From positions 2,728,001 to 2,792,000 of the forward strand of contig OX337237.1 of the NCBI GenBank assembly GCA_946965045.2: a stretch of DNA of 64,000 bases, given 5' to 3'. The notes under the pieces are model-generated. The model made no database searches and was not told the DNA's origin. It saw nothing but the letters and a program-made list of their open reading frames with translations. The position numbers and the translations under genes are program-made. Below are positions 15,769 through 46,258 of this stretch, piece after piece (position 1 is the stretch's first letter; the number at the start of each line of letters is the position of its first letter). Source of the stretch: Epithemia pelagica (Eukaryota > Protista > Bacillariophyta).

Positions 15769-16296
15769 TCGGTGCCAACGAAGAGAGAACAGGAATGCTA
15801 CGGGCTTACCGCTTGTCCTGGTCGGGAATCAATCAACATGGGGCACTTTGACTCGAAGCTTGAATAGACCATGTTGAAGGAGGTTCACCCCCGGACATTC
15901 CACCTTCTAATGATGACTTTCTTCGCTCCACCTACTACTTGCTGCTTGTTGACATTGGCAGTTGACAGATCTACTCTATTCCCGGTTCCCGACTTCGGAG
16001 AATAAGTGATGGTGGCTTGGGTTGTTGGGGGAGAGGCACAAAATAGCCCTTGTGCGACTGCTGATTGCCGATGGTTGCTACGAGCTCCACCGCACGAAAG
16101 TTCTTCGCGCAGTAGCCCGTGCTTCACCAACTGATGAGACTTCCGCCCAACGAGATTCACTACACCATACATTTTCCAAGAGTAAAATGAATTGCCCCTC
16201 ATCCACGGTTGATTTTCTCGTAAGGTTACCTCGTACCGATGAAACCTCTCACCATGATACGAGTATGCGATTACCCTTCCTGTACGAGTGGTAAAA

Positions 16297-19038
16297 CAAC
16301 AATCATACTAGTGCAAAATGTACAAACCGCTTCCTAATGATAAGCCTATTTTATGTTACCACCACCACTGCTGCTTGTGGTCGTTGTTATAGGAGATTGT
16401 TGCATTCAGCCGAGACGAGGAGTTCATTGTTGAGTTTGGCCCCGTTGTCGTGGCACCGGATTGTCTCTTTCAGCCAAACCAAGGAGTTGATTGTTGCGCT
16501 TGTTGTAGAACCGTAGAACTGAGAGAGACAGAGATGGAGAGCAGCTGGTGATTGGTGTGTTTGTTGTCATTGTCATTATCGTGGCCCCGAAGTGTTTCAC
16601 TCGGCCGAACCAACCAGTTGATTGTTATGATGGGGACATGCACTGCCACGCGAGGCCAAAACCAATTGGTTACATGTACTTGGTTGTGTCTGTGGTCATG
16701 GTTGTGGGTGTCGTATCATCATCACCATCCGATGGCTCGGTCGTTGTGGTTGTTGGTTTTGTCGTCGTGATTCTCCATCCTGTTCTGGTTGTGGCGACAT
16801 CGGCCGAGGAGGCTGCCAAAAAGTGAAGGGAAGTCTCCCTCCATTGTTGCACCATAACACTACCTTTCAGTTGTTTATTGTTGTGTTCTTAGGTCCAGTA
16901 CAACCTCGCTGTTGTTGTTGTTGTTGTTTCCATCTGTGGTCCTGTCTTGGTCGTTGTCGCCGCTCATCAACTTGTCGAACCAAACAGTTTGCCGCTCCCA
17001 AGGCTCTTCGACCAAGGCCACCACAGCTCCACGGCGTCCACTCCTTCTTCTTCCTCTCGAACTCTGTTGTCGGAAGCAGCCGCACCACGGGCATCACCAT
17101 CCTTGATGGCAGTAGAAGCCCCTTCGACCCACGGTTGACACTTGTTTTGTTAGGACTAGTCAGGCTTTTGTTGCGTTAGAACCACCAACGGACGAGGCGC
17201 GCATTTGTTGTGTTCGGACCAATCGATGACGACGAGTTGATTGATGCGAGAAGAAAGATGCTGGATTCATTATATCGATTGCCATCCTCTTCTTTCCACG
17301 GTCACTTCCTTCGCTCCGGTTGCCAAAAATGGAAGGTCTTCCAAATCTTCCTGTAGCTCCACAGATTTTCACAGTTCATCCCTTCCCGTCCATTCCCTCA
17401 CGGTACACATGAAGATCAAGCTTCCTGGATGGTCGGCGGAGTGCTTGCACCTTTCGTTGGAGGTGCACACCGGCTTGAGTGTGCCATGGTGGTGTTATGC
17501 AGTGCAAAATGACCGTAATGCTCTTCCTACCAAGTTAGAATCACTATAGAAAAAACAGTGGAGGCCCTGAAAGCACGGATTACTGCGCGATGAACTTTCG
17601 TGCGGTGGAGCTCGTACTCCTTGCTACCCGCTCTCTACCTTTCTACGCATATCTGCATTGTACTCCCAGGGAGTACTGCCATTGTACTACTCCTTGTTTG
17701 CTGGTGTCTGTCGAAAGGTGTCCCAAACAATATACGGACTCCGGGGGCCGAAAAATTCCCCCACAGTTAGCCGTGCTTTTCATACTTGTACTCCATTGTC
17801 TATAGTTATCTGGGCCGGTGGTTTAGGAAACCACGGTCATGATACACAACATGGCAAACTCAAGCCGGTGTGCACCTCCAACTAAAGGTGCTAGCACTCG
17901 ACCACCACGGAGTCCTCAGAATCAAGTGTACTGTGACGGAATGAACGGGTGGCGATGGGTTGGCCATTTTGGTGGACCGAAGGCAAGGTTTTTAAGTCTT
18001 CCAAATCCTGGTGGGAAGGAAGCAACAAGATTACCAAGATTGGAGTCGGAGAATGATGTAATGAAGAAAGATTGCAATGAGGGACGACAATGGAAGCTCC
18101 TAAATGGATGGATGAGTCGTGGGAGAGCAGCGGCAAGGACACACGGCAATCAACTGGAGGATTCTCGTCTGAACAAAACAGTCGGCCGCAACAACGACAA
18201 CACCAACAACAGACTGTCTCTCAATGTTACGAGACCACAAGAACCCAGCAACAACCGGCCACCTTGTGGAAGTGAAGGGTCGAGTCCATCATCATGGCTG
18301 CAACAACCGCAACAACCTCAACCACAACAAAGACAGCGACTGATTTGTGGCACCACACGACGAGTTGGACGCGAAGTGAACCATTGTTTCCCAACGACGT
18401 GAAGCCCACGACCACAAAACCAACATCCACCACGACCATTCCATTGGATGGTACAAGACAATGGCACCAATGCATCATTCAACTACTCTAGACCTCCAAC
18501 AAAACCTAAATGCAACAATCCACTCCTCGTTTTGGCCACAACGACAACAACATCCAATGCAACAATCAAAAGCGGGAGGATCTTGACGACAAAACCAACA
18601 GCCACAGCGAGCGAGCCATCGGATGGTAATGATGATACGACACCCACAAACGTGACAACAGATACCACCAACCACACAACCAACTGGTTTTGGCCTCGCG
18701 TAGCATGCATGCCCCCATCGCAACAATCAACTCATCGTTTTGGCCGAACCAAACAATCCGGGGCCACGACAATGACAATGGCACCAAAAGCAACAATCAA
18801 CTGCTCTCCATCTCTGGTTCTTTCAGTTCCACAGTTCTACAACAAACACAACGATCAACGCCTTGTTTCGGCCGAACGAGACAATCCTGTGCCGCGACAA
18901 CGACAACAAATGCAACAACCAACTCCAAGTGAAACCATCACCTATACCCATGACAACAAGCAGCAGTGGTGGTGACTACATAATATAGGCTTATAATTAA
19001 TAAGTGGGTTGTATATTTTGCACTTGTATGATTGTTGT
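16297..19038. repeat. Long imperfect inverted repeat; arms ~16297-16800 and ~18560-19038
   Basis: CAACAATCATACTAGTGCAAAATGTACA... at 16297 is the reverse complement of ...TGTATATTTTGCACTTGTATGATTGTTG near 19038. The shared blocks CACCACCACTGCTGCTTG and CCATCCGATGGCTCG occur in inverted orientation. Confidence 0.8.
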
Positions 19039-19043
19039 AAATC

Positions 19044-19255
19044 TACTTTAATAGCCAGGTTGGGACGAGGAGGAGCTAGGGTGTGAGGAGTGGCTTAACT
19101 CCGAGAAGGGCAATAGCGACGAGGAGTGGACTGCCCCTGTGAGATCCGCGTAAGCGGATCGAGGGGGCAGTCCACGACGAGAAGCTATTGCCCGACGAGG
19201 AGTTAAGCCACGAGGAGCGCCCTGCGACGAGGAGTCCCCCGGGGCTATTAAAGTA
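19044..19255 (+). other. Rod-like nested hairpin (~212 nt) at the left end of element A
   Basis: Nested stems TACTTTAATAGC/GCTATTAAAGTA, GGGAC/GTCCC, GTGGCTTAACTCC/GGAGTTAAGCCAC, GGGCAATAGC/GCTATTGCCC, GTGGACTGCCCC/GGGGCAGTCCAC and GATCCGC-GTAA-GCGGATC, separated by purine-rich G..A loops. Confidence 0.95.
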
Positions 19256-20221
19256 TGTTAGCTTCCTTTGTCACGAGGAGTCGTGCGGGCGCACCCTAGG
19301 TAATTTTCGGTCTTCCTAAGTGATCGTTTATCTCTATCGATACTTAGTAATAGTTGGCCTATTTAGCTTTTTACATTCGCGCCGGTACAGTGTTAGTTAG
19401 GTATCTTGCTTGCGTGCTTGCGCACCTCATCCGATTGCTCGCGTTTCTCAATAAGCAACATACTGTCGTGCTTGCGCAACAAATCCGATGGCTCGCGTCT
19501 ATCAAATAGGTACATACGACAAGTCGTGTTGTTTACATAGGCGTGACACAGGAATACATAGGTAATGTCTATATATTACTTAGATCCCCCACCCCCCAAC
19601 GGACATTCCCACGATAATCTCTCACAGACGACACATTTTGTGCAACAACAATGCAACAACATGATGAGAAAAGGAAGACAACCGACCATGGTGACTCCTC
19701 CTCCTTCTGGTGGAGTTGCTCATGCTTCCAAACAGGTTGATTGTGGAGTCATAGACCTTTGCACCCCTCCTGATGTAATAGATCTTTGTAGTTCGTCTTC
19801 GTCGTCTAGTTGCTCATCAGACTCTTCGGGCGAAACTCTCGTCTTTGTCACCAAGGACAATGCAACAGACGAATGGGATGGCAATCTCTTTCGCCGCTCG
19901 GAACTCTACCACGACTGTACTGGGTCATCCGACGACTTCAGCACCTGTAGTTCCGACCCTTGGATCATGGAAATCCTACAGAGACGGTAAGTTTTCGCCG
20001 CGTTTCCCACCATTGTCGTGTGTTTTCGTTCCAGACGTCTTCCCAAAATTTCAAACCACCTGCCGTGCGCGCGCGCATGGTTGAGTCGCTGTTCTGTTTC
20101 CTACTGATTCCTACGTGTAACCTACGTGTCCGCACTTTCTCGCAAGTGTCACCGTCTTCACTTTCCTCACCCTCATTTTTCATTGTGCATCGTTTTTTCA
20201 TCGTCGTTTCACAGCCTGACC

Positions 20222-23200
20222 ATGGCGACTCGACAATCTCGCCGCCAACTGGAGCGGGCGGCCGCAAGAAACAATGTGGACGCCACAAACTCAACCAATA
20301 ACGTGAACCCGTACCGAAATCCCGGCCGCCCACCCAACAACCGTGCCAATCGTCCGCCATTAACGGAAGTGAACCTTCCTCCTTCCCGAAATCCTCGTCG
20401 ACAACCACAACAACAAGACAACATCCAAGCTACAGAGCAATCAAAGTAAGTGACAGTATGTTTTGTTTCTATTCTTATCTGTCTCATTCTAACCACCATG
20501 TTTCCTTTTTCCCTTCAGCAATGTTGCGAGGCCTGATCCTTCTTCCCGTCGTCACCAGATCGAAGGTCTCGATCTTCCCAATGGCGCCAACGACGCCCTT
20601 CTCAACGCCGCAACGGTTGTGGAATCTTGCAAAGTGGATACCAAGCTTGTATCCCAAGCTTTGGTCAAACGGAAGCATCTGACATGGGATGCCGAAAAGG
20701 GCTCCATGCGGATTGGTGAGGTCACCTTCAACCCGCCCACCATGAACTCTTCTCGTGCACGTTCGTTGGCCGCCTGGAGTCAATATTGTCGTCTGTCTCC
20801 AACCATATACGGCAACAACACCTTCACCATCCGTGACCTCACTGGATGCAAGGCGTCATACGACAAAGAAAAGGCCGCCTCCGTCAACAAATTTTTGGAG
20901 TGTCTTCAAAAGCATCACGAGATGCACTTTCTTCTTGAAATCGTCGAAGATATCGATGAACTGTCGGGTGGAGATACACCAACGCCGCTCCTCTTTCTTG
21001 CTCTCCGCGGAGTGAAGACTCCATCGAAATTGACATTGTTGAATAGTTGCGTAATGGTTTTTCTCGTGAACCATCGAATGCGGGGTTTCAATATGGAAAC
21101 GGATTCGGTGGAGGACCCCAAGTTTTTCTTCCAGCCCAACACAACAATGAAGATGCTGAACCATCTCTTTGCTCTTCTTAAAACACACGGGATCGTGATC
21201 GCTCAAAGTGATCTCAAACATGGGCTTGGCAATTACCATGCCTACCTTGCCGACATTTGGAACAAGGCAGCCCTCGTCCGACCCGAATTTGGCCGCCTAC
21301 CCAATCGTGCACCAACGGCATTCGACGACGAAGAAAAGATGCGGACATGCGAGCCGGAGCTTCGGCCGTTCGAAGACGGCGAGTATTCCACGGCTTTGAG
21401 CATGGGAGTCTACAAGACTTCCCGAGACTTCGGTCTCCGCGGCCCAGAAGTAAGTTGTTGTTTGTTGTTGTTGTATTTGTTGATTGTCGCCGTTGTTGTT
21501 GCTGCTGTTGTCTAACAGTTTGGTTGTTGCATGTTGTCTCCAGATAAGACTACTTAAAGTATCCGATTTAATTTTCAAGGCGTGTCTTGACAAATCGTAC
21601 GGAATGTTGGCTGGGCTTCCCGCGATTATTCTCAAAGAATCTGTGCTTGAGAAATCGTCGCACCTCGCGACGAACAATCTCGCCTTTGATCGAGTCGCCA
21701 ACGATACACAAGACTCGTCGCACATGATCATCGACAACCCAGATGATAAGTTTGCGACGTACAAGATCCTCTTGCACATCATGAAAGTGGCGCACCCGCC
21801 AGGATGGCAGGGTCTGCTGTTTCTAGAGCAGATACCCGCAAAACACCTCAAGGCCCGCAAGGATGGTGCGAAGCACCTCGGTTGGACTGAGCTCGTCCCC
21901 GAGACTTCACAGAATGACGCGGATGGATCTGGCTTCAAGTGTGCGGGTAGATTGGGCGTGAACTGGCCGTTGAGGAATGCCCGTCAACTTGCCATTCGTT
22001 GCAAGTTTGACAACGCCGAGAAGGTGACGTTCCGGACCGGCCGACGCACCGGAATCTCGAACGTTGCCAACTGTGGAGTACCACAGAAGTCGTCGAACTC
22101 CTTCGCCCGTCACAAGTCAAGTGAGGTCAACGTACTGTACCAGGACGTCTCGAAAGAAAATCATGTTCGGACCGTCACGGCCAACTGGTACCGTCCACCC
22201 GAAAAGAGCGACGAGGCCGACAAAGAAAACACGAAGAATGGTACGTAGACTCATTGCATGAATCACTCTTTATACTTTGTTACTAACTACTCTGCTATTA
22301 TGTTTAGATGAGGAGGGATCCAAGAAGAAAGAGTCAAAAACCGCTTCATCCCCCTCGTCCTCGTCGTCGTCCTCCACCGACATTGAGGCCTTTATGAAAA
22401 AGGCCAAGAAGAAGATTCGCCGTCGCAAGGCGTTGCAGCAGCTCAAGGCTGCCAAGAAACAGAATGACGATTCGTCCATCGAAGACGAGGATTCATTGGC
22501 GCGAATCCTTCGTCTCTTGGACGAAAAACCATCCAAGTCGTCCAAGTCGCAAACCCATGGTAAGTTGATTGTTGCTTTGTTGTTTTCTTGGTTGCATCGA
22601 TCTCATTCCGTCTTCTCTTGACCACAGACACCAAATCCAAGAAAAAACGCAAGAAGAAGAAGAAGAAGAAGAGTAAGTCGATCGCGGACTCATCATCATC
22701 GTCATCTTCATCGGATGGCATGCTTGAAGTTCTTTCCCGATGTCAAAAGAAAAAGAAAACTTCTCCGCCCTCTACCATCGTTGGTACGTAGATTGTTTTG
22801 TTTTGTTTTGTTTGATTGTTGCTTTATATGTTCTCACTGCCATTCCCTGTTTCATCACCTTCGTCCACTCCAGTGGCTTCTTCAAAGCCTCCTCCACCAC
22901 CTCCAGTCGAGCATGAAGCGCCACAACCGCCACCACCAGTCGTTGTACCACCACCACCACCAACAACAACAACCACGGTGGCCGTGCAACCACCACCAGC
23001 TACGTCAACAATGGACCAACATGCACCACCTCCAAACAGTGCAACAGTCCAAGCACCAACAACAACCACCGTAACAGCCATGAAACAACCTCCACTGCCA
23101 TCTACTGTTACGGCCACGCATCCACACCCAACAGCAACGACTGAGCAACAGCCACCACCACCACCACCACCAACCATTGCGACCACGGAACCAACGGTAT

Positions 23201-23715
23201 CCGCTGCAGCTCCACCAGCCATTGCGACCACATCAACGTCGCAACCACCTCCACCACCACCAACCATTGCAACCACGGAACTGCCACCACCACCCACAAA
23301 TGTGCCATCGTCAACGGCCCTTGTTCCGACGGAACACCACACCAGCCACCACAATCCCTCTCAGAATCATCACGGTGGATATCATCGCAATGACGGTAGT
23401 CGAGACCGCGGGGTTGATTGTCGTGTGGAGGAGCACCATCGTGTTGCTTATCATCGCAACAACTGGTACTCCCCACCTCCACCACCATCCGACTCGCCGC
23501 CATATCATCCTCATCATCATTCCCACCACCATTCTTCCCGAGGATACCACCACCGCCCGTACACTCCATCGCCACCACCCCCACCGTACTACCGTGACCA
23601 CATCCACCACCGTGGTGGTGGATACACTCCACCACCTCCACATCATCATCATCATCACCATCATCGTGGTTCGCGTTACCATGGCGGTAGCCATGGATAC
23701 GGCTACCACTATTGA
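20222..23715 (+). CDS. Tyrosine recombinase (Crypton-like) with a long low-complexity C-terminal tail, ~1033 aa, 6 exons
   Basis: Exons 20222-20445, 20519-21449, 21544-22240, 22308-22559, 22628-22783 and 22874-23715; all introns are GT..AG and phase-compatible (3102 nt). YR motifs FGLRGPE|IRLL..SD (Arg), EKSSH (Lys), FRTGRRTG (HxxR-like) and ARHKS...VLY (His, with Tyr at 22138). Confidence 0.8.
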
Positions 23716-24388
23716 AGTACCATAGTATTCGGTACGTTTGCTGTTGTTGTTGCATTCTTGTTGATTGCTGTATCATTGTTCTTACCCCTTTATTCACTCT
23801 TTTTGACAGATTGATGTCGCTATTGCTCTTTGCATGACCATTTGGGTGGTGGTCTCTAGCTTGACGTCTCGAAAGGTACGTGAGAATTAGATGATGACAC
23901 TTGTTCCGCGTTCCACTCCACGTTACGTACCAGTTTCTCACACGTTCACGATTTTTGTAATTCTGTCTTGGCATGAAATTTCGTGGTGCATCTCTTTGCT
24001 ACTGAATTTTCCGTGTCGTGTGAAAACTCGTCTGTGTCGTGTTTCAATTATTGCCTACATTTTGATTATTGTTTTTTGGTCTCTGTGTTTCCGTTGCTGT
24101 TGCTGGTGCTTGCTGCTTGATTCGTGTGGTGTTTGTTTGTTGTGCTCTTCTTTTTTCCGTTGGGTGCACCTCTTGTTCGCTTTGTGCTCTTTCCCGTATT
24201 CTCTCCCTGTGGATTTCCTGGGTGTACTACTTTTCTGGGTGTACTACTTTCCTGGGTGTACTACTTTTTCATTTTGGGCTATTCTAATTTTATACACTAA
24301 AATAAAAATCCAAGTACAGTAATTTTTAGGGCTTATGTAGTGTGGGTAGCGTTTTGGGAAAGGTACGACGACGAGTGGTGAAGGTAGT

Positions 24389-25396
24389 AAATCTACTTTA
24401 ATAGCTGAGGGTGGACGAGGAGGAGCTAGGGTGTGAGGAGTGGCTTAACTCCGAGAAGGGCAATAGCGACGAGGAGTGGACTGCCCCTGTGAGATCCGCG
24501 TAAGCGGATCGAGGGGGCAGTCCACGACGAGAAGCTATTGCCCGACGAGGAGTTAAGCCACGAGGAGCGCCCTGCGACGAGGAGTCCCACGGGGCTATTA
24601 AAGTATGTTAGCTTCCTTTGTCACAAGGAGTCGTGCCAGCGCACGCTAGGTAATTTTCAGTCTTCCTAAGTGATCGGCTCTCTCCTTCGATACTTAGGAG
24701 TCGAGAGCCAAATTATTATTATACAATTACGCTGACCCAACTTTTGATAGGGCACTAGGTAATCTTTAATTGTTTGTAAATAGCCATGTCACTTAAGTGA
24801 TCACATCCGATTACATCGGATGAATAATAACGGTTTATGCTTAAGTAACATTTGTCTTACATTTTTTGGAAGGCCAATCAAACTCCGAGGCGTGCCTCGT
24901 TTTTAAATAAGACAACAGAATACTTACGAGTAGAGTCAATGAATGTCCCCCATTACCCCCACGCCTCTTCTCTCCTTTCCCGTTCCCGACCCGACCCGAC
25001 CACGACCACTGAATAAACGACACAAACACAACAACAATGGGAAAGCTGACCAAGGTGAGTCCTCCTTCTCCGGGAGGATGGAGGATGTATCCATAATCCA
25101 TCCACCAACAAAAGCTCTACCAACTCCCAACTCACAATGATGGTGGATTGTTGCGAATTGCGAACCTCTGTCCATTGTCCATTCCTGGCCGTCTTTTGGT
25201 TTGTTTTTCGTTTCGGTGTTTGGGTGGTGCTACTTTTTGTTTCTTTTCCCGGGCTATTTTGCATGATTACACTAGAATAAAAAATCTACGTACAGTAATT
25301 TTAGGGGCTTAGGTAGTGTGAGTGTGGGGAGTGACTTACTCCTCAGTGAGTCCTCAGTGAGTGGGGAAGGGTAGGACGACGAGTGGTAAAGGTAGT
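24389..25396 (+). mobile_element. Non-autonomous copy 'B' (1008 bp) of the YR element, head-to-tail after A
   Basis: Same left end and hairpin (24394-24605) and same right end (...GACGACGAGTGGTAAAGGTAGT), with no long ORF. Collinear with the copy at 35877-37464. Confidence 0.85.
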
Positions 25397-25585
25397 ATTA
25401 ATACTTCCCGGTGTCGAGTCCTTTCAAGGAGGGACCGCCCGGCGCGGAGGGTAGAATGACGAGGAGGGCAATGGTCGAGGAGGGCGCACGCCCGACAAGA
25501 CAATTGCCCGTCGAGTCATTCTCCCGACAAGCCGGGCGCGCCCGACGCGAGAGGACGGCCAGACACAGGGAAGTAGTAAACTTAC
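25397..25585 (+). other. Divergent rod-like hairpin 'C', probably the left end of a related element
   Basis: Stems TTAATACTTCCC/GGGAAGTAGTAA, GTGTC/GACAC, GTCCT/AGGAC, CGCCCGGC/GCCGGGCG, GGGTAGAATGAC/GTCATTCTCCC, GGGCAAT/ATTGCCC and GGGC-GCAC-GCCC, with GAGGA/GACAA loops. It starts immediately after B's GTAGT end. Confidence 0.8.
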
Positions 25586-25804
25586 TCCCTATCAAGCTGT
25601 GTAGGTAGTGAGGATTTCCTGGAAGCCATGTCACAAAGTGTCACACAAGTGTCACACAAGTGTCACACACGAGAGGGAAACCGCGCGACTCGCACGAAAC
25701 TACTTTCCGGTCGTACAAAAATTCCTACTGTAGTATAAAAATGTGAGACGAACTACCTACACAGTCTGGTATGGAGTTAGTGGTGAACCTCCCGTCTCCC
25801 GTAC

Positions 25805-26370
25805 TACAACACTGGCTGTGTTTCCGTGGTCGTCGAAGAAGGCGGTAGGACAGTAGCGCTGGGGGAGATTGTTTCGACAACCCGACTGTCGAAGACACAC
25901 AATGGGTATGAGCAATCGGGACCACCGCAAAACAAAGTGCAAGAACCTGGAGAAGTTCTCCACTTGTCGTGGCCGCTGGTGGTTCCATAAACGCACCCTC
26001 CTTGTCCTCCTGCGGTTGGTTTTCCTTGCCGTCTCTTCTTCGAGATCGATATGCCCGACCGTGCTCCTGGAGGTCTTTCAGCAATAGGACGAGTACGTTC
26101 ACGATCTGCGTCAAACCCACGGAGAAGAAGTCCAATGGGAGATTCTGTGAGATACGACGACGCACCATCCTAACCAGACAAATCGTACTACGACAATGAC
26201 ACACTTCAACATGCAAGTACGATAGAGCAGGGATGAACGGTAGTCTTGAATCAACCAGAAGACAAAGCAATCGACAAATCGATGATGCCATTTGAGTGGA
26301 GGCATGGCGACTGGCGACAGTTTGATCTACAACTGTCTGAATCTTCGATTGAACCAGGAAATTCAATGGA
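25805..26370 (+). pseudogene. Internally deleted copy of the threonine aldolase gene
   Basis: 25850-26200 aligns with 46210-46560 (e.g. GAGTACGTTCACGATCTGCGTCAAAC) and joins directly to sequence matching the gene's 3' end, 47895-48030 (TAGAGCAGGGAT..., GTCGATGATGC, TGGCGACAGTTTG). It contains stops. Confidence 0.75.
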
Positions 26371-26769
26371 CCAGTTCGTGATGTATGAAGGATCAAAAGG
26401 AACCAGGATGGGCCAGCAGACAAAACAAGTCTGGTAACGAGTCCTACAAAAGTGTGTTTTAATATCCGAACTTGCATGGATTCTTTACGCATGGCTGCAT
26501 GCTCGGGGGACAAATCACTCATGGAATTTGTACAATACTTGTTACTACGATGGACTTTTACGGCAACGACGACGCAAAGCAACACCATTGACGAGAGATG
26601 TCTGAGTGTACAGGGGATACGGATACCACAAAAAGTCGGTGTTGTGTCAGTTGGTCATTGATAGTTTTTTCGAATGCCGAGCAGAGCTTGGGTTTGGGTG
26701 GTGTGTCGTTGTGTTGGCGTTTGAGGAGGCGCTCGCTTTGAGGGAGTTCGAAACGGTTTTAATGACCGT

Positions 26770-28695
26770 CGTCATCGCACACCGACACGCCGTTTCCCTG
26801 ACCCCGAACGACACGTTCGTTTTGAGTTGCCGTCGGAGGACAGTAGCTGGAGTACCCATTGTTTGCGTCGCCACACCACTTTTGCGCAGAACGCGTCCTT
26901 CTTTCTCTCAACGACCTCCGTCAACACCGACACCAACTCCTTTGCCACCATGGCAAATGCTCTCGACTGGACACATTGGAGCGACCCAGACTCAGGAGAA
27001 CCGTGCTACCTCGACGATCGATCCTTCTCGCTTCAAGCCACCACAGCACAACAGTTGATTGACGATTGGGACCCACGTTGTTTTGCCTCAAAATCGTTTG
27101 ATGCCGATAATCCTTCTTATTTTGATTTACCAAACATGACTCCCGAAGAGCAAGAAAAATGGTTCATCGCAATGGATCGGGAACTCGACGAACTGGAGGG
27201 CAAAGGAACATTCCGACTGGTGCCACGGAGCAACGCCCAAGGAAAGGAGATTGTCGACACTATGTGGACCCTCAAGAGAAAGCGTCTCCCCGATGGAACG
27301 ATCTCTCGCTACAAAGCACGTTTGGTGGTCCGCGGCGACCAACAAAAGGCCACGTTCGACAAAGAAGACACTTTCGCACCCGTAATTGATTGGCCCTCTG
27401 TTCGTTTATTGTTGATTCTGTCACTGCAACACAACTTGATCACTGCCTCCATTGATTTCAAGAACGCCTTCGTTCAATCCAGCTTGCCTGAACCCATTTA
27501 CGTCAACTTGCCATCAGGTTATGGAAAAGGCCACAACGATAAAGTTTTGGAAGTCAACAAGAGCCTGTACGGCGACTGCCGTGCACCACGTTTGTGGTAC
27601 GACTATTTGAAGGCCCGTCTGGAAACACTTGGTCTCACACCCGACGGAAACGATCCTTGCCTCTTCTGCAAGCCTGGATGCATCATGGTGACGTACGTGG
27701 ACGACGCCATCATCTGTGGAATCAATCAAACGGCAGTGGATGAGCTTCTGAACGGACTCACAAAATTAAAAATGGATTTTGACCACCTTGGCGACTTACC
27801 GACTTACTTGGGAGTTCAAATCACACGCTCCGACGACGGAAGCATGACTCTCACGCAACCACATCTCACTCGTAGCATCATCACAGCACTCGGCCTCACG
27901 GACAGTTCACCCAAGAAAACACCAGCAACACGAACACTCGGCAAGGACAAACACAAGCCTCCCTTCTCCGAAGACTTCAACTATCGCTCTGTTGTCGGAA
28001 TGTTACTCTACCTTGGGAACAACACTCGTCCAGACTGTGCCTTTGCAATCCATCAAGCCGCAAGATTCAGCAACGACCCGCGCGTTACACATGGAGAGGC
28101 ACTGAAACGCATCGGGCGGTATCTAAAGGGCACAAGTACACAAGGTTTGACACTTAAGCCCTCCAAAGATCTCACTTTGGACTGTTTCGTGGACGCAGAC
28201 TTCGCCGGTATATGGGGAAACGAAGATCCCCAGGATCCTTCTAGTGTACGATCACGTACTGGCTTTCTAATCTCTCTCGGCGGTTCCCCAGTGACATGGT
28301 CAAGCAAATTGCAAACGGAGATCGCACTTTCTACAATGGAAGCCGAATATATCGCCGCCAGCACCAGTATGCGGACACTACTTCCACTCCAACGACAACT
28401 ACGGAAAATGACTACCCATCTACGACTTGACAAACCTGGTGCAACCTCCATTACAACCATTTGGGAAGACAACCAAGCCGCATTGAAACTTGCCACAAAG
28501 GATCCCCCTCGAATGACACCGCGATCCAAACATATCGCTGTCAAATACCACTGGTTTCGCTCCAAACTCAATACCGGCCCAAACGGCATCCAAATGAAAC
28601 CGATTGCCACGGACGAACAACTCGGAGATTGTTTCACGAAACCTCTCGACACAACAATGTTTGAAACCTCCCGGAAGAAAATCATGGGATGGTAA
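26770..28695 (+). CDS. Copia reverse transcriptase + RNase H (inverted segment of pol)
   Basis: Motifs YKARLVVRGDQQ, IDFKNAFVQS, KSLYGDCRAPRLW, YVDD, DADFAG, WEDNQAA and KHIAVKYHW. The frame is open from 26770 and the PPT GAGGGCGAG precedes the LTR at 28716. Confidence 0.93.
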   Translation, partial: RHRTPTRRFPDPERHVRFELPSEDSSWSTHCLRRHTTFAQNASFFLSTTSVNTDTNSFATMANALDWTHWSDPDSGEPCYLDDRSFSLQATTAQQLIDDWDPRCFASKSFDADNPSYFDLPNMTPEEQEKWFIAMDRELDELEGKGTFRLVPRSNAQGKEIVDTMWTLKRKRLPDGTISRYKARLVVRGDQQKATFDKEDTFAPVIDWPSVRLLLILSLQHNLITASIDFKNAFVQSSLPEPIYVNLPSGYGKGHNDKVLEVNKSLYGDCRAPRLWYDYLKARLETLGLTPDGNDPCLFCKPGCIMVTYVDDAIICGINQTAVDELLNGLTKLKMDFDHLGDLPTYLGVQITRSDDGSMTLTQPHLTRSIITALGLTDSSPKKTPATRTLGKDKHKPPFSEDFNYRSVVGMLLYLGNNTRPDCAFAIHQAARFSNDPRVTHGEALKRIGRYLKGTSTQGLTLKPSKDLTLDCFVDADFAGIWGNEDPQDPSSVRSRTGFLISLGGSPVTWSSKLQTEIALSTMEAEYIAASTSMRTLLPLQRQLRKMTTHLRLDKPGATSITTIWEDNQAALKLATKDPPRMTPRSKHIAVKYHWFRSKLNTGPNGIQMKPIATDEQLGDCFTKPLDTTMFETSRKKIMGW

Positions 28696-33324: not shown

Positions 33325-34657
33325 ATATTGCTTTGGTTTTGCAATGAGGACGTCCAGTGAAAACCAATTTGTGAAGCGGTCGTGAAACTGTGGGAGTTGA
33401 ACGAATCTGAGACACAGTTCATCTTGAAAGGTAGCGGATGCAATCGGTTGGGAGTCAAGGGCTTTGTTTTCTTGAGTCTCTCCACGATTCGAGGGTTAAG
33501 TAAAGAAAGAGAACCTTGCATGTTCCAAAGCGAGTATGTAAGAAAGAGTATCAACACCCAGCGGTAGCGTTTGGGCTCATAACCTGTCGTTGTGTTGGCG
33601 TTTGAGGAGGCGCTCGCTTTGAGGGAGTTCGAAACGGTTTTAATGACCGTAACCGCTTGGGGTTGGTCATTGTCGGATCTTTCGTTTGGAAGGTTCATGG
33701 TTGGTCCTAGTGGGAGTAGGTGGAAGTAGATGTACGTTTTGGTAAATTTCAGAATTGTGTTACGATTAGATCTAGAATGTGATGGTGAGTGCTGAGGTCG
33801 ATTTTGTATGTGAGACAGATGTTTTTCGTTGGCAGTTGTTTGCTTCGACATGGTGTTTGTTTTCGTTCGGGGGTGGAGTTCTGAAAGACGATCGAACGAC
33901 ATGGAAGACAATGCCCAAGCTTGTAAACAACAGCAAGCCGTGTGTCACGTGTGTCCTCTAGGAAGCTCCTCCATCTCGTGACGAGGCAATCAATGAAACT
34001 TTCTCCACCGTCCGGACCCAACTATGAGCACAAGAAATGCGACTGGTTCAACGCAAGGAGAAAACGAAATTTATGTGTGCCTCGTGCCAGCCCCAAGATC
34101 CCACCACCCACCAAACACATGAATAAAGTGAAGTGAACCTCAAACCTCAACACTCGATTAGAACGACTGTTCGGAGATGCAACATGGAATAGTCTGGTTT
34201 ACGTTCGCGCTCTCCTTTCTGAAAATCTAATTGTCCCCTCTTTGGGGGATCACCCTGAACCCTGACGTCTGAGGTTGCGTGTTGCGTTGTTCGAATTTCG
34301 ACATCGCAATGAGACTACTCTACCCTTGACCGTTGACGTCCTGGATTCCCTCTTTTTGAAGTGCGTGAATCTCGATGTGGCCGCAAGGAGAAGTACGTTG
34401 TACGCTCGTCTGTTTGGAGTACTCGTTACTCGTACTACTCAGTGGATTGGAGTATTCGCACGAATGATTGTTTTCAATCCGAATATAGCATGGAGAACAG
34501 CTCACATAACAATACGAGCGATAAGGACATGAGGACACGATGTCGAAGTCCACAATAGGCACAAAACGTCATCATCGCATATATTTGGCTAGTCGCTGCA
34601 CTATCGACGGTCACAAGTGGGTATCTTGAATCTCTTTTTGCTTTGAAGAATAGCAGC

Positions 34658-35302
34658 ATGGACGAACGAGATCTACGAGGAGGTGGTGGTATAAGAGGTG
34701 GAAGAAGAGGTGGTGGTGGTGGTGGAAGAGCAGGAAGATTTGAAGGCAGAGGTGCAGGAAGAGGAAGGGGTAGAGGCAGGGGAAGGGGAACAGATGGAAC
34801 GGAAGGGGGGTCATTACGAGGGCTCAAGACGTCCATGAAGTTTGTTACCATTTCCTCCCTCAACGTGACGACGGACGCGAAATCCAAGTTGTCAGCAGCA
34901 TTTCTCAAGGCAGCCGCGAACCCCAGCAATGGGACAGTGCAGGTACGTATGATGCTCCGCAGGCTTTGGCGGATGCACTCCGCGCAATGTTGTTCATACA
35001 GGACTTAATCTTATGCTTTTGTCTTCAGAATTTGGTAAACGAAGTGAATAGAAACACAGCTATTGCATCTGAATGGTAAGTTCACCATGTATCATGAGCT
35101 ATTGACAGCGGTACTTGAGCACCGATTCCAACCTCACCACCGTTCCATTTTTCGTGGTTTCTACGTTAGGCACATTGTGGTTTCCGAAAGTCCAATTGGC
35201 TGCAATGCTACAAATTCGGAAGTGTTGTACGGCCATACCGAGACGGAGGATTGTTATTTTCTTGCGTTTCGATCGCGGAGTCGCTCTTCAGAGTCTGAAT
35301 AA
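34658..35302 (+). CDS. Possible small spliced gene with an RGG/GR-rich N-terminus
   Basis: GGRRGGGGGGRAGRFEGRGAGRGRGRGRGRG tract. Candidate introns 34943-35028 (phase 0) and from 35076 to an AG near 35169. No recognisable domain. Confidence 0.3.
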
Positions 35303-35629
35303 AGCAACACTCGCTGCAATGAGATAATGCCAAATATTGCATTCAACATGCATCTACCCCCCAGTTGGCATGATGATCAAGATGGTAGTAACCTGAAATA
35401 AGAGGCATGGAAACTCATTTAGGAGAGAATTGTTGACACAATTAACCTTTTGGACTCATGGGAGCGCGTTGTACTTTCTCATTGAGAGCTACCGCTTTGA
35501 CGAGACCCACGCCGATAACGCTGAATCCTCTTGACGAGACTCCAAACCCCCAAAAGCAGGGGCCCCAGCAGTAGTCGGGTCGCATTACCCCCCCGATGCC
35601 GATGGGTACTTCTAACCCCAAATCAGGAA

Positions 35630-35876
35630 CCGAACCCGGATGTTAGATATGTGATGTGAACGGAACATTGCGAATTTTTCTCCCATCATCTGTTGTTTCG
35701 TCGCTACCAAGAAATGTTCTGAAGTTCTTAGGAATGGTCGACACAACCAAAGCCCAGTTATGTGATTCCATCCACTGGTCTGAGAATCGTGGCATCACTT
35801 GAACAAGGATAGGAGGCGCATGGTGCATTTCTCTGTTTTTGGGCGCATGGTGGTGGTGTCATGGTATGGGTCTTGG
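35630..35876 (+). pseudogene. Decayed paralog of the threonine aldolase upstream/5' region; continues at 37465-37651 and 43833-43950
   Basis: Aligns with 45845-46075 (CCCGGATGTT.AGATATGTGATGTGAA, GGAATGGTCGACACAACCAAAGCCCA). Collinearity resumes after each TE insertion. Confidence 0.8.
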
Positions 35877-37464
35877 ACTACCTTTATCACTCGTCGTTCT
35901 ACCGTCGTCGTGCCCTTCCCCACTCACTGAGGAGTGGGTCACTCCCCACACTCACACTACCTAAGCCCCAAAAGTTACTGTACATGGATATTTCATTTTA
36001 GTGTAGTAATCTAGAATAGCCCGGGAAACGAAAAAGTAGGTGTTGGTTGTTGGTGCTGTGTTGTGTCTTGTGTTGTTGTATCAGTCGGAGTGGGAAATGG
36101 GGAACATTGACTATAAGTATTCTGTTGGAGTATTTAAAGAACAAGCACGCCTCGGAGTTTGATTGGCATGCGATAAATGTGGGACAAATGATACTTAGAC
36201 ATTGAGCGTTATAAGTCATCCGATATAGTTGTATGTAATCCCTTAAGTGACCAGGTTATTTACAAAGGATTAAAGATTACCTAGTGCGCCATCATGAGTA
36301 TGGCCAGCGTAAGTCTCTAAGACTAATTAGGCTCACGAGTACTAAGTATACATTAAGTGTACCGATCACTTAGGAAGACCGATAAATACCTAGAGCACGC
36401 TGGCATGACTCCTCGTGACAAAGGAAGCTAACATACTTTAATAGCCCCTGGGGACTCCTCGTCGCAGGGCGCTCCTCGTGGCTTAACTCCTCGTCGGGCA
36501 ATAGCTTCTCGTCGTGGACTGCCCCCTCGATCCGCTTACGCGGATCTCACAGGGGCAGTCCACTCCTCGTCGCTATTGCCCTTCTCGGAGTTAAGCCACT
36601 CCTCACACCCTAGCTCCTCCTCGTCCCACCCTGGCTATTAACGCCATACGTAAGGAACGCGTTTTAAGCCTAACGGATTAGCAAATAAACTACTCCCATA
36701 AAACTTTAGCGATATATGGTTTGTGTCCCATAAACTGCTCCCATCTTAACACGGTTTGAAAACTCCCAGTTTTAATTTCGAGTACAAATTTATTCATAGT
36801 GAGAATTTTTTGTCATTTTAGTCGCTTTTCTCGAACTTGAGCGGCCATCCGCGATGACCATGAGAGACAATGAGGGCGGACAATGAAAATGGCATGGATC
36901 ATCTTCCAATGATGCCAAACCAGGTCAGAATGGATGAAGGAAAGTCAATTGATCAAGACAGATGGTATGTGGAGGCGAAAGTTGACCAAGGAAAGGTTCA
37001 ATGTGTCGAAAAAGGGTCAATGCTGTGAAGCAGGCAAAAACATGGTCTGAGAGAGGGAATTGCCGAATGCTCAACAGAGGTGCTGTCAAATCACAAATAA
37101 AGACAAAGTCCTATAGTTCATATTATTTTACACCAGAATGGAAGGTCTTGACATTTGCTGTTGGAAATTGAGTGTGTGCGTACTGCTCAAAGTTGGGCCA
37201 TGGTCGATGGGATGAGAAAATCACAAAAATCATCCAAGTTTTGATACACGAAACGACTGTTATAATTTCAAAATCAGTGTAGACTATGATATATGAAAAT
37301 GTTCAAAATTCCACAAACTATTAGAATTACAAGTGAAAAAGACAATGACGTCTATATTCCAACTAGTAGATGTCTTCAAAGTTATGGGAGGAGTGTATAT
37401 ACTGCTCGAATTTATGGGATCAGTATATATACTGCTCCCTTACGTATGGCGTTAAAGTAGATTT
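35877..37464 (-). mobile_element. Non-autonomous copy of the YR element (~774 bp net), interrupted by a MITE
   Basis: The reverse complement has the same left end (AAATCTACTTTAA|TAGCC), the same hairpin (36434-36641) and the same right end (...GACGAGTGATAAAGGTAGT). Confidence 0.88.
36642..37451. mobile_element. 810-bp MITE with 14-bp TIRs and a TTAA duplication
   Basis: Perfect TIR CGCCATACGTAAGG at both ends, flanked by TTAA (36638-36641, 37452-37455). Removing it restores GGCTATTAAAGTAG, as in copies A and B. Subterminal TCCCATAAA repeats. Confidence 0.9.
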
Positions 37465-37948
37465 ACAACGTCCGGCTTCATGTTATAAAAGCATCTTGCA
37501 TCTCTACTCGACCGTGGAGATTTAGAGGTGTCATTGCATGTTCTGGACTGTCCATACCACAGCCGTAGCTGTGCTTCCTTGTTCATCAACACATATTGGA
37601 AAGCAGCGCTGGGGGAGAATGTTTTGACAGCCCGACTGTCGAGGACCAACGATAACAAATTACGCGTGTGATACCAAGTGAAAAACTAAAATAGTGAGCA
37701 TTAAGCTATGCGTCCCTCATGGGTTAGCTACTCGCCCAAAACTCGCTTAATATCAGTCGCCTTTCTTGGTCCCCTCACAATTGCTATGTCGGACCATCAC
37801 GATATAGTCACATTTTGCCAAATTCAGAATATCACATCAACATATATCTTCTTCCATCTCCTCCATACCTGCTTCTGAGCGCCCCTGTGTGGCGTGCAGG
37901 ACGTACCCAGTCCCCTTGGTCGGGCGGGAAACGTACTCCGGGGTTGAA

Positions 37949-43273: not shown

Positions 43274-46258
43274 GGTTGCGATAGTTCTTCTTTTTCGGAC
43301 TTGTTCGGACTTTCCAGCGAAGTGAGCTTCATTAGTTTTGGGGGAATTTCCACGTCATGGTCTGAATTCTACTTGCGAGCGAGCGGTAGAATCGGAGTTG
43401 GAGTGCTTGCATAAGGTGCTAGGACGGCGCACGCCATTTAAGTAATGAACATGTCCGTATAGCGGCATCCTTCAACGGCAGGATGTGCGGCGCGTCCGCC
43501 ATTGCCCAGTGTGTGCGCATACGCTGACCACACACCACAATCATCCATCTCGAGCCCCGTTGCAGGCGAGATATTAGTGAGATGAAAGGGAGTACAGGTA
43601 TCCAACCTAGGGCAGTCATTCTTCCAAGCGAATGATCTAGATATTTCGCGACCTTCCCAGGCCATGGTAGTGTAACATCTCCTTCATCGGTTGATGCATT
43701 TGGGTCTGATAAACCAAATTACGCGTGTGATACCAAGTGAAAAACTAAAATAGTGAGCATTAAGCTATGCGTCCCTCATGGGTTAGCTACTCGCCCAAAA
43801 CTCGCTTAATATCAGTCGCCTTTCTTGATAACGATGGGTAGGAGCACCACCAACAACCACCCAAGAACCTAAAGAAGCTTTCCCTTGTCACGGCCGCTGG
43901 TGGTGCCATAAACGCTCTTTCCTCGTCGTCCTTCGGTTGGTTCTCACCCACGGAATTGAAACAATACTTGTTGCTACGAGGGAGTTTTACGGCAACAACG
44001 ACGCAAAGCAACACCATTTATTAGAAATGTCTGAATGTACAGGGTATACGGATGCCACGAAAAATTCGGTGTTGTATCAGTTGGTTATGGATGTTGTTGC
44101 AGTTTTTCAAATGCTGAGCGGATCTAGGGCGTTGTCAGAACTCAATCTGAAAGACGATCGAACGACATGGAAGACGATGCCTTGAAACCGTGTTTCACGT
44201 GTGTCCTCTCTGGGAAGCTCGTGACTGGGCAAGATCAATTTGCTTTGAGAAAACTTTCTCCGCCGAAGGCACCCAACTCGATGTATCAGGGGACCCAAGA
44301 AATGCGACTGGTGTGGTTCAACAAGGAGAAAACGAAATTTATGTTATGCGCCTCCTGCCTCCTGCCAGCCCCACCAAAAACATGAATAAAGTGAAGTGAA
44401 CATCAAACCTCAACACTTGATTAGAACGACCATTCGGAAATGCAACATGGAACTGAATACTCGTATTCGTAGGGTCTGGTTTCTGGTTTACGCGTTCCGC
44501 TCTCCTTTCTGAAAATCTCTTGACAAAAGACAAGAGTCAAATTCCCTCTTCTTTGGGGGATCTTCGGGTCGTTGCGTTGTTCGAATTCGCAATCTCTCGA
44601 CTACTTTGCCTTTGACTTCTTGGATTCCCTTACTCCTCGACCCTCGACATGGTAAACCTTGGGTTTCTGGTTGACATCTTGTCGTCCGTTGTGGTTAACC
44701 CAGGAACTCGCCATAGCCGAGCCGAACCGCTTGTTGATCTTCGGTGAAACTTACCAATCAAACGGTCCCGTGTCCCTTGCCCCCTCCATTCTCGGTAACG
44801 AATTGATCTTCAACTATACAATTGCTGATGAGCCATGCATAGCGCATACAGATTTTGTATTCATTGGGCATGAGCAAAACTCAAAGCAAACAGGGGTAGG
44901 GGATGTGAATTACTTCAAGCAAGATTCCCAGAGGCCAATCGCATTCTCATCACGGCAGCCAAGCCATGAACCGCCATGTATGCATACAGGCTTATGCTCT
45001 TCTTGACAAGGGTTGTCTTGATTTGTGGGGAATCATTGCATAAATCCAAAAACAAGGATTCTTTTTCGTATTCTCTTGAATTGATCTCTAATCTCGACGC
45101 AGAAGATGGTTCGTTTTGTTTGGTTCCCCCTCATGATGGTCCTTTGGCTTGGTGACGGCTTGGACCCTGACATGGTCCCGGACTCTCTGCGAGTTGCGTC
45201 TGCGAAAAAAGATTGGTCCGTGGGTCGGAACGCTGATAAAGTGGACCAAGAACTCGAGGAAGACAAAGTACTTTCCGCTCAGGCGACAAGCCAAGCCCTT
45301 CGTGGATCAGAACCGCTTGTGCATGAACCAAGCAGCAGTGACACAAAAGTCTGGAAGCGTCCAAAGATTGTTGTGGCAGCGGGAGTTGTCAGGAAGACCA
45401 ACTCTATCAGGAATGTCGGACACAGGGAATTGCCGGGCAAGCCGAAGGCGGCCAAGAAGGCGGCCAAGAAGGCGGCAGCGGCGAAAGCAGCTGGTACCAT
45501 GGCAGTCAAAAAAGCAGAACCAGTCATGAAGGCTGCTCCTGCTCCGTGAGAATTCAGGCAGTTCAGATAGTTACGACTTTTTATCCAATGATATGATGAC
45601 TGACTAAAGCGGAGAGGTATAATCTTCTGCCCTGGACGGCGAAAAAAAGACCAGAAGAAAGAAAGATAGTGTCCTGACAATCGTCATGCTTTGTTTCGAG
45701 CATTTCATGGTAGTTCCATTGCATAGCACCATTTCAACGATCCACCTTTCGTTTTTGAATACTGAACCTCTAGCACATACATCCGGCGATTCTCTACCTA
45801 CAATTAGATAGGTCATAAGATGCGGAGAGGGAATGAGCACAGAACCCGGACCCGGATGTTCAGATATGTGATGTGAATGTGAACGGAGTTTATTCTCGTC
45901 GCTGCCAAAAGTTCATGTTGGAAGTTTTGGAATGGTCGACACAACCAAAGCCCATTTATGTTATTCCATCCACTGGTCTGAGAATAGCGGCATCAAGAGA
46001 ACAAGGGTAGTAGGCGCATGGTGCATCTCCCTGTCTATCGCCTCATGGTGGTGGCGTCATGGTATGGTTGTTGGACAACGTCCGGCTTCCCGCTCTACAA
46101 GCATCTATGATAGACCTCGAAGCTTTCGACGTGTCATTGCATGTTTGTTCTGGACTTCCCATGCCACAGCGCTAGCTGTGTTTCCTTGTTCATCAACAAT
46201 TACGGGAAAGCAGCGCTGGGGGAGATTGTTTCGACAACCCGACTGCCGAGGACAAGCG

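Follow-up and report, generated by a model that had tools for sequence, protein, structure and literature searches.

The window analysed here, that is, the whole stretch of 64,000 nucleotides from the diatom Epithemia pelagica, contains an array of three elements, A, B and C, in which the GGTAGT end of A is followed by B and the GGTAGT end of B by C, next to a duplicated host region. Its main features are:

19039-24388, plus strand: element A, autonomous, with its hairpin at 19039-19262
24389-25396, plus strand: element B, a 1-kb non-autonomous derivative of A (hairpin 94-95% identical, 3' end about 85%)
25391-25396, plus strand: GGTAGT, the 3' terminus of B and target or putative crossover sequence for C
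25397-25781, plus strand: element C, 385 bp, non-coding and non-autonomous, of a Crypton-like family (ATTAATACTTCCC...CTGGTATGGAGTTAGT)
25397-25585, plus strand: rod-like hairpin of C, about 71-95 pairs, with four double tandem-GA modules and the apical loop GCAC
25580-25609, plus strand: IR-L, a 30-nt inverted copy of the 3' end of C, with an internal GGTAGT at 25604-25609
25636-25669, plus strand: three tandem 11-nt repeats (AAGTGTCACAC), whose number differs among C copies
25752-25781, plus strand: IR-R, the 3' end of C, which would pair with IR-L in a circle or head-to-tail junction and so extend the hairpin stem
35877-37464, minus strand: element B', a second short A-type element besides B, in opposite orientation and within a paralogous host-repeat copy
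25782-26703 with 33651-35881, 37465-37655 with 43828-46079, and 46080-48076: three tandem copies, of about 3 kb, of a host segment

The interpretation of the last of these as a transposon ("R") was rejected, as it is a tandemly duplicated host region carrying a beta-eliminating-lyase gene (ORF 45932-48076, Pfam E-value 2.9e-24). The assignment of 25752-25781 to the end of this repeat was likewise rejected, since comparison of the flanks of 20 copies identified this segment as the 3' end of C itself. One host copy is interrupted by a Copia element and another by a 6-kb insertion bordered by repeats of 113-120 bp (37651-37768 and 43708-43827); an RVT_2 match at 26827-28695 belongs to a separate Copia insertion and not to A, B or C. 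The empty site corresponding to B' lies between positions 46079 and 46080, in a paralogous copy of the duplicated host region, and the filled and empty sites share only GT. Two host copies each carry a recombinase-element insertion at nearly the same point (within 4 nt), in opposite orientations. The left flank of A (19026-19038, GTATGATTGTTG followed by T) and the host insertion point (46064-46075, GTATGGTTGTTG followed by G) have 12 nt in common and are otherwise unrelated, and this 12-nt match of the A flank to the host repeat is no better than that obtained with shuffled sequence. Both sequences resemble the 3' end of C (GGTATGGAGTTAGT), and an extended target preference is conceivable. 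A piggyBac-type MITE of 810 bp (36642-37451), with inverted termini CGCCATACGTAAGG... and a TTAA target duplication at 36638-36641 and 37452-37455, sits inside the left end of B'. An inverted repeat of 480 bp (arms 80% identical, 16296-16776 and 18575-19038) has a right arm that stops exactly at the left boundary of A. The host gene adjoining the duplicated region encodes guanylate/adenylate cyclase and phosphodiesterase domains (49017-50420 and 48356-49120, both on the minus strand).

Element C forms a separate repeat unit of 385 bp that is sharply delimited, exists in at least 82 nearly identical copies and also occurs in head-to-tail arrays, whose spacing is 375-386 bp. Its ends were set by the point at which the flanks of 20 genomic copies diverge, and the contigs of an independent run (X4) break at matching positions (25393-25394 and 25780-25781). 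Searching the 189-nt hairpin against the organism's own 60.5-Mb assembly yielded 41 scored matches at 99-100% identity out of 161 candidates, and a 42-nt apical probe detected 82 genomic copies (61 of them exact, 41 on each strand), while the reversed 42-nt control probe had no match in the same genome. Depth of k-mers over C reached about 100-380 times that of its flank in two runs of the same organism. C has no ORF of its own and is entered only by the tail of a flanking 287-aa minus-strand ORF (25725-26588), without Pfam match, whose 3' end overlaps 25725-25781. The internal GGTAGT of IR-L (the equivalent of 25604-25609) serves elsewhere as an alternative right end of mini-units of 213 bp. 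We observed such units in tandem at G000:C1:461855-462256 (L018/L019), where they consist of the hairpin and IR-L alone and terminate at that internal GGTAGT; their existence suggests that the hairpin plus one GGTAGT is sufficient for recombination.

The plus strand of segment 25380-25600 folds into a single long imperfect hairpin (-52.0 kcal/mol with DNA parameters), and none of 200 shuffled sequences (mean -33.4, standard deviation 3.6; z-score -5.15) had an equal or better fold. Its outermost stem pairs GGTAGTATTAATACTTCCC with GGGAAGTAGTAAACTTAC, thereby spanning the junction between B and C, and this pairing is kept in all five aligned C-type sequences (alignment columns 1-19 with 179-201). 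The energetic difference between strands depends on the parameter set. With DNA parameters the minus strand of the hairpin region is nearly equal to the plus strand (-49.1 kcal/mol), whereas with RNA parameters a 219-nt hairpin segment gives -123.0 kcal/mol on the plus strand versus -102.9 on the minus strand, and the plus strand is favoured by 10-36 kcal/mol in each of the 12 hairpin sequences tested. Because the DNA parameters give near-equal strands, any argument for the use of one strand rests on the GA/GA motif and on the known behaviour of sheared G.A pairs. The Rfam 15 covariance models had no match in 24200-26000 at E-values up to 1, and a scan for sigma-70 promoters and terminators, not relevant to a eukaryote, found nothing of note.

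The 5' arms and hairpins of the A and C types could not be coherently aligned with MAFFT, so the two groups were analysed separately, without a joint covariance model. Despite this divergence they follow a common design, in which stems of 4-13 pairs separate modules where C-GA-G-GA-G faces C-GA-C-GA-G. Among the 86 internal loops of two by two nucleotides found in ten representative hairpins, 57 have GA opposite GA and 13 more GA/AA or AA/GA. Read antiparallel, the GA/GA loops are 5'-GA-3'/3'-AG-5' in a C...G context, the classic setting of tandem sheared G.A pairs, and are so on the coding strand only; the complementary strand would have C.T/T.C mismatches. Compensatory double changes affect 9 of 71 pairs in the C-type group (five sequences) and 12 of 69 in the A-type group (six sequences); sliding the partners gave only 1-4 such changes, and the observed counts were reached in none of 500 column shuffles. 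Even if the covariation rests on these five and six sequences alone, it shows that structure is kept without conservation of sequence: the stems covary and the GA/GA modules remain constant. The initial annotation, made from sequence alone, had described at 25397-25585 a second hairpin whose stems differ from those of A in sequence and repeat their nested design, with GAGGA, GACAA and GTCGA loops and a 3' arm able to pair back across the junction, and had argued that such conservation of structure without sequence speaks for a function. The description was confirmed, all three loops being present, and so did the structural part of the argument, given the compensatory changes and the 82 copies; the function itself is inferred.

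These regularities could also be explained by a site that acts only as a double strand. In this alternative, which remains possible, the arms of the palindrome would be recombinase-binding arms and the CGA(G/C)GAG heptamers, 16-18 bp apart, would be accessory sites similar to the arm-type sites of lambda, with no single-stranded fold. In its favour, the modules are direct repeats at regular spacing on both arms, folding with DNA parameters reveals little strand asymmetry, and Crypton models assume double-stranded circles (PMC3212892). Against it, binding sites alone leave unexplained the compensatory complementarity of the spacers between heptamers, the fact that the heptamers always face each other as 5'-GA/3'-AG, and the stable apex of 3-5 nt (GTAA, GCAC).

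The reading that we prefer, in which the hairpin is a structured transposon end, was examined in the recombinase-encoding relatives. The ORF of A at 21484-22248 has 38 paralogs in the genome, with 38-100% identity, that form about eleven subfamilies. A C-type autonomous unit of 4.4 kb (G000:C8, from 1441567 to 1437141, minus strand), whose recombinase is 48% identical to that of A, starts with a hairpin 80.6% identical to that of C with compensatory stem changes (for example, GGCAATTG/CAATTGCC in C becomes GGCACGTG/CACGTGCC), has a matching 3' end, and terminates in GGTATGGAGTTAGG, followed by two tandem C copies. C-type hairpins lie about 1.5 kb upstream of the recombinase genes in this unit and in subfamilies S7 and S8. 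Six further subfamilies (S2-S5, S7 and S8) each have a coding-strand rod of 200-240 nt (-115 to -160 kcal/mol), located about 1.5 kb upstream of the N-terminal domain and starting directly after (G)TAGT, GTTGT or TCGT. Such a rod was present in all nine recombinase subfamilies examined (about eleven exist; S9-S11 were left out), whose autonomous elements measure 4.4-5.4 kb, six of them shown to start right after a (G)TAGT-like junction. Distant homologues with 28% (P0029) and 23% (P0071) identity to the query in alignment A5 are encoded on two metagenome contigs, L073 and L074, and both contigs carry a rod with CGACGAG/CGAGGAG modules on the coding strand upstream of the gene (L073, 97-260, z-score -4.6; L074, 2520-2790, -114.8 versus -84 kcal/mol). 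In L074, the segment behind the hairpin and the contig end form an inverted repeat of 37 nt, which reproduces the arrangement of IR-L and IR-R. The hairpin design is retained over recombinases from 100% to about 23% identity and also occurs in at least two further sources. No recombinase gene is preceded by one of the 82 C copies within 3 kb, so C appears to be purely non-autonomous with an unidentified helper; since the apical stems of its autonomous relatives are not those of C, these relatives do not reveal the mobilising enzyme either.

The constant position of the hairpin raises the possibility that it works as RNA, namely as the coding-strand leader of the recombinase transcript, where it could serve for regulation, for protein binding or as a substrate of Dicer and so adjust expression of the element itself, and that short elements carry it merely as their terminal part. 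Several observations agree with this: the hairpin invariably occupies the coding strand and precedes the ORF by 0.1-1.5 kb, RNA parameters give a strong asymmetry between the strands, and a homologue was found in a diatom transcriptome; moreover, CGAG tandem G.A is a classic RNA motif. We consider this explanation unlikely, as the hairpin starts at the first bases of the element, which would place the promoter outside it, the non-coding C family has preserved a hairpin of 99-100% identity throughout its 82 copies, and units of 213 bp that contain little other than the hairpin still multiply. In addition, no Rfam family matches, and the single RNA run examined covers the flank and not C.

A role as a transposon end agrees better with the insertion sites of C. 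In 18 independent insertions, the six bases preceding C are G (10), G (13), T (17), A (17), G (18) and T (18), so that xxxAGT is found in 18 of 18 and TAGT in 17 of 18, with a target profile GGTAGT followed by A; the first base after C is A in 11 of 16 insertions. The same GGTAGT terminus ends A (24383-24388) and B', and the element ends have corresponding phasing (AAATCTAC...AAGGTAGT for A/B, ATTAATAC...GAGTTAGT for C). C begins with A and ends in GTTAGT, hence TAGT is found at both junctions without any further duplication, as expected if a joined-end site crosses over with a genomic site that resembles it. An environmental RNA contig spanning the end of the array reads CATGG-TAGT-GGTGAACC, with a single TAGT. 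The alternative that C is there by chance, or is an unrelated fold-back MITE of a cut-and-paste (TIR) family that landed beside B, finds some support in C being short, non-coding and multi-copy. It is all but excluded, as the ends of C are not inverted repeats of each other, only the shared TAGT is duplicated, and the hairpin, IR-L and IR-R are also found on recombinase-encoding elements.

With regard to these data, the initial annotation had inferred a sister family using the same target rule, which is supported by the end phasing and the 18 insertions. It had stated that it would be refuted if C-type hairpins never occurred together with tyrosine recombinase (YR) genes or with its GTWG-N5 junctions, and the hairpins found about 1.5 kb upstream of such genes (G000:C8, S7, S8) do not fulfil this condition. 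The right end of C, which it had proposed to locate, is at 25781; the copy at this locus is accordingly a 385-bp non-autonomous element and not the head of a long one. The junction "GTAG-N5-YTAC" had to be refined and is better described as a TAGT crossover inside the base of a palindrome.

The enzyme of the A family is encoded in several parts:

21432-21452, plus strand: box I (GLRGPEV), at the end of the upstream ORF, ahead of an intron
22033-22140, plus strand: RTGRRTG...RHK...Y, after the intron
22816-23715, plus strand: Pro/His-rich tail ORF of A

The Pro/His-rich ORF resembles the low-complexity C-termini of homologues of 900-1000 aa (P0012/P0029), and both end in ...GSHY. From this likeness, the recombinase of A is probably one protein of about 1000 aa made from several exons. 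The catalytic set, composed of R (GLRGPE), K (EK(S/T)), RTGRRTG, RH(K) and Y, is invariant in 10 paralogs and at least 90% conserved in 59 homologues. Pfam searches with ORFs of at least 70-100 aa from A and the C-type autonomous element returned no match and no reverse transcriptase, a blank that is no proof of absence; a word-based protein search with the 580-aa ORF and a PDB profile search with the 10 paralogs also had no match. An exhaustive profile search retrieved 196 cluster representatives, including a transcript of Entomoneis paludosa (1027 aa) and a protein of Cylindrotheca fusiformis, both uncharacterised. Distant members have the canonical HxxR...H...Y and weak Pfam matches to DUF3504 and Phage_integrase; one of them, P0143, matches DUF3504 at an E-value of 1.9e-4, below the Pfam cut-off, and the window's own protein has no Pfam match. 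When the PDB profile search was done with the 59-sequence alignment, seven of the eight best matches were tyrosine recombinases (XerA, Int, XerD), aligned on RRtg..RH..Y, with weak support at the sequence level (best E-value 0.011, for XerA).

An AlphaFold model based on the 59-sequence alignment reached pLDDT 81 and pTM 0.81; the one based on 10 sequences was unusable (pLDDT 42) and was discarded. The input was the in-frame 600-aa ORF of a 90%-identical copy (L033), the two exons of A being left unjoined. The top Foldseek matches of the model were almost entirely Cre, Xer, Int, Flp and IntI, plus QRICH1 and topoisomerase IB. In the comparison designated VIA, Z was 13.6 to Cre residues 130-341, with 170-196 residues aligned at 2.9-5.0 A; QRICH1, a DUF3504 protein, aligned at Z 10.2. 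The recombinase of the A family is therefore predicted by the model to have a tyrosine-recombinase fold. Protelomerases, which are relatives of tyrosine recombinases, act on long palindromes, and a recombinase-like enzyme could be imagined to cut at the dyad of the hairpin and seal hairpin ends on a linear intermediate. Such telomere resolution is very unlikely here, considering that the centre is an asymmetric loop of 3-5 nt and not a perfect dyad, that the 18 insertions place the element boundary at the stem base instead of the centre, and that the model is structurally closest to Cre, Xer and Int.

Taken as a whole, C is probably a small non-autonomous transposon with the hairpin as its cis-acting left end, and a diatom tyrosine recombinase of the Crypton kind probably moves it in trans. 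The identity of the feature, a cis-acting end of a non-autonomous Crypton-like element, is well supported, and we hold it to be likely; the mechanism is inferred and not shown. IR-L and IR-R are 83% complementary over 30 nt, the autonomous relative at G000:C8 keeps the pair with covarying bases (GTGTAGGTAGT in C versus ATGCAGGTAGT), and, across the A/B junction, the segment behind the hairpin of B likewise pairs with the 3' end of A. Owing to this complementarity, once the ends were joined in a circle or tandem junction, IR-R, hairpin and IR-L would combine into a single palindrome, about 250 nt long, whose base contains the TAGT crossover. The recombinase would excise the element as a circle, and integration would be a crossover between the joined-end junction and a genomic GGTAGT. 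No circle or excision footprint was observed; the reads were assessed only as contigs, without information on strand, start or circularity, and tandem junctions mimic circle junctions. As GGTAGT ends would be preferred crossover targets, elements would land on the ends of each other, which may explain the A-B-C array. The recombinase would also recognise, at least in part, the folded top strand, either extruded or single-stranded, a step that is again inferred, without any observed contact between recombinase and DNA. Recognition of the top strand is favoured by the modules, which give tandem G.A pairs on the coding strand only, and that of a folded strand by the maintenance of complementarity, module register and loop-like apices together with the multiplication of short hairpin cassettes. 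A bolder version of this model would be a clade of eukaryotic YR transposons that recombines via a folded single strand, with the tandem-G.A rod as a strand-specific site and cassettes of 213-385 bp spreading in trans; on present evidence we lean slightly against it.

Of all classes of eukaryotic DNA transposons, Cryptons are understood least, with ends that have been called featureless and recombination sites that are unknown. They have been described as lacking TIRs, with ends that are hard to define and terminal repeats of 4-6 bp, TATGG in the case of CryptonS (PMC3212892). The elements studied here resemble Crypton and CryptonS of oomycetes and Phaeodactylum (Goodwin 2003; Kojima and Jurka 2011, PMC3212892) in that a tyrosine recombinase is all that they encode, without reverse transcriptase, in their short terminal direct repeats, which are the assumed crossover, in their presumed circular intermediate, and in their stramenopile host; non-autonomous derivatives of Cryptons are also known (CryptonI-1N1_RPro). 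Accordingly, the A- and C-type elements have the YR catalytic residues, no reverse transcriptase or second transposase was found in them, and their short terminal direct repeat is not accompanied by other duplication. By contrast, the diatom elements possess a covarying rod of 190-240 nt and a split inverted repeat, their recombinase has RxxR instead of HxxR and escapes the Pfam models DUF3504 and Phage_integrase, and the termini of C are TAGT and not TATGG, although a TATGG sits 9 nt inside its 3' end (GGTATGGAGTTAGT). The rod and IR-L/IR-R violate the absence of structured ends in Cryptons, which is a descriptive trait of the known members rather than a mechanistic requirement. The main Crypton survey (PMC3212892) mentions no hairpin or palindrome, and structured Crypton ends are undescribed in the full-text literature that we searched. 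In the diatom elements, what we infer to be the recombination site is visible as a long, covarying, purine-zipped palindrome that is whole only when the ends are joined. It offers a testable enzyme substrate in three candidate forms (duplex, cruciform and folded single strand) and an annotation rule for such elements and their abundant short derivatives in diatom genomes, and may point to a compact pair of recombinase and hairpin site working in a eukaryotic nucleus.

Other mobile elements share parts of this organization. YR retrotransposons of the DIRS1 type (DIRS, Ngaro, PAT) also have termini complementary to an internal segment and ends brought together before recombination, but they encode reverse transcriptase and RNase H, none of which was found in A or the C-type autonomous element. 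IS200/IS605, Helitrons and Replitrons have strand-specific imperfect end hairpins and a single-strand logic, whereas their hairpins are short and their enzymes are HUH endonucleases, unlike the diatom enzyme with its predicted tyrosine-recombinase fold. The closest parallel is with bacterial sites: integron attC, recognised by integron integrases, and, likewise, the attP of CTX phage are folded single-stranded substrates of tyrosine recombinases. As in C, these are imperfect hairpins that conserve structure and not sequence, with strand-specific non-Watson-Crick features and a crossover in the base of the stem. They differ in being bacterial, 60-150 nt long and marked by extrahelical bases, while C is eukaryotic, with about 71-95 pairs and regular tandem G.A modules. 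C thus presents the attC-like combination of a conserved imperfect hairpin of variable sequence beside its TAGT crossover, its use as a single strand being inferred and not shown; if the bolder model were true, the diatom hairpins would be the eukaryotic counterpart of integron attC or CTX attP.
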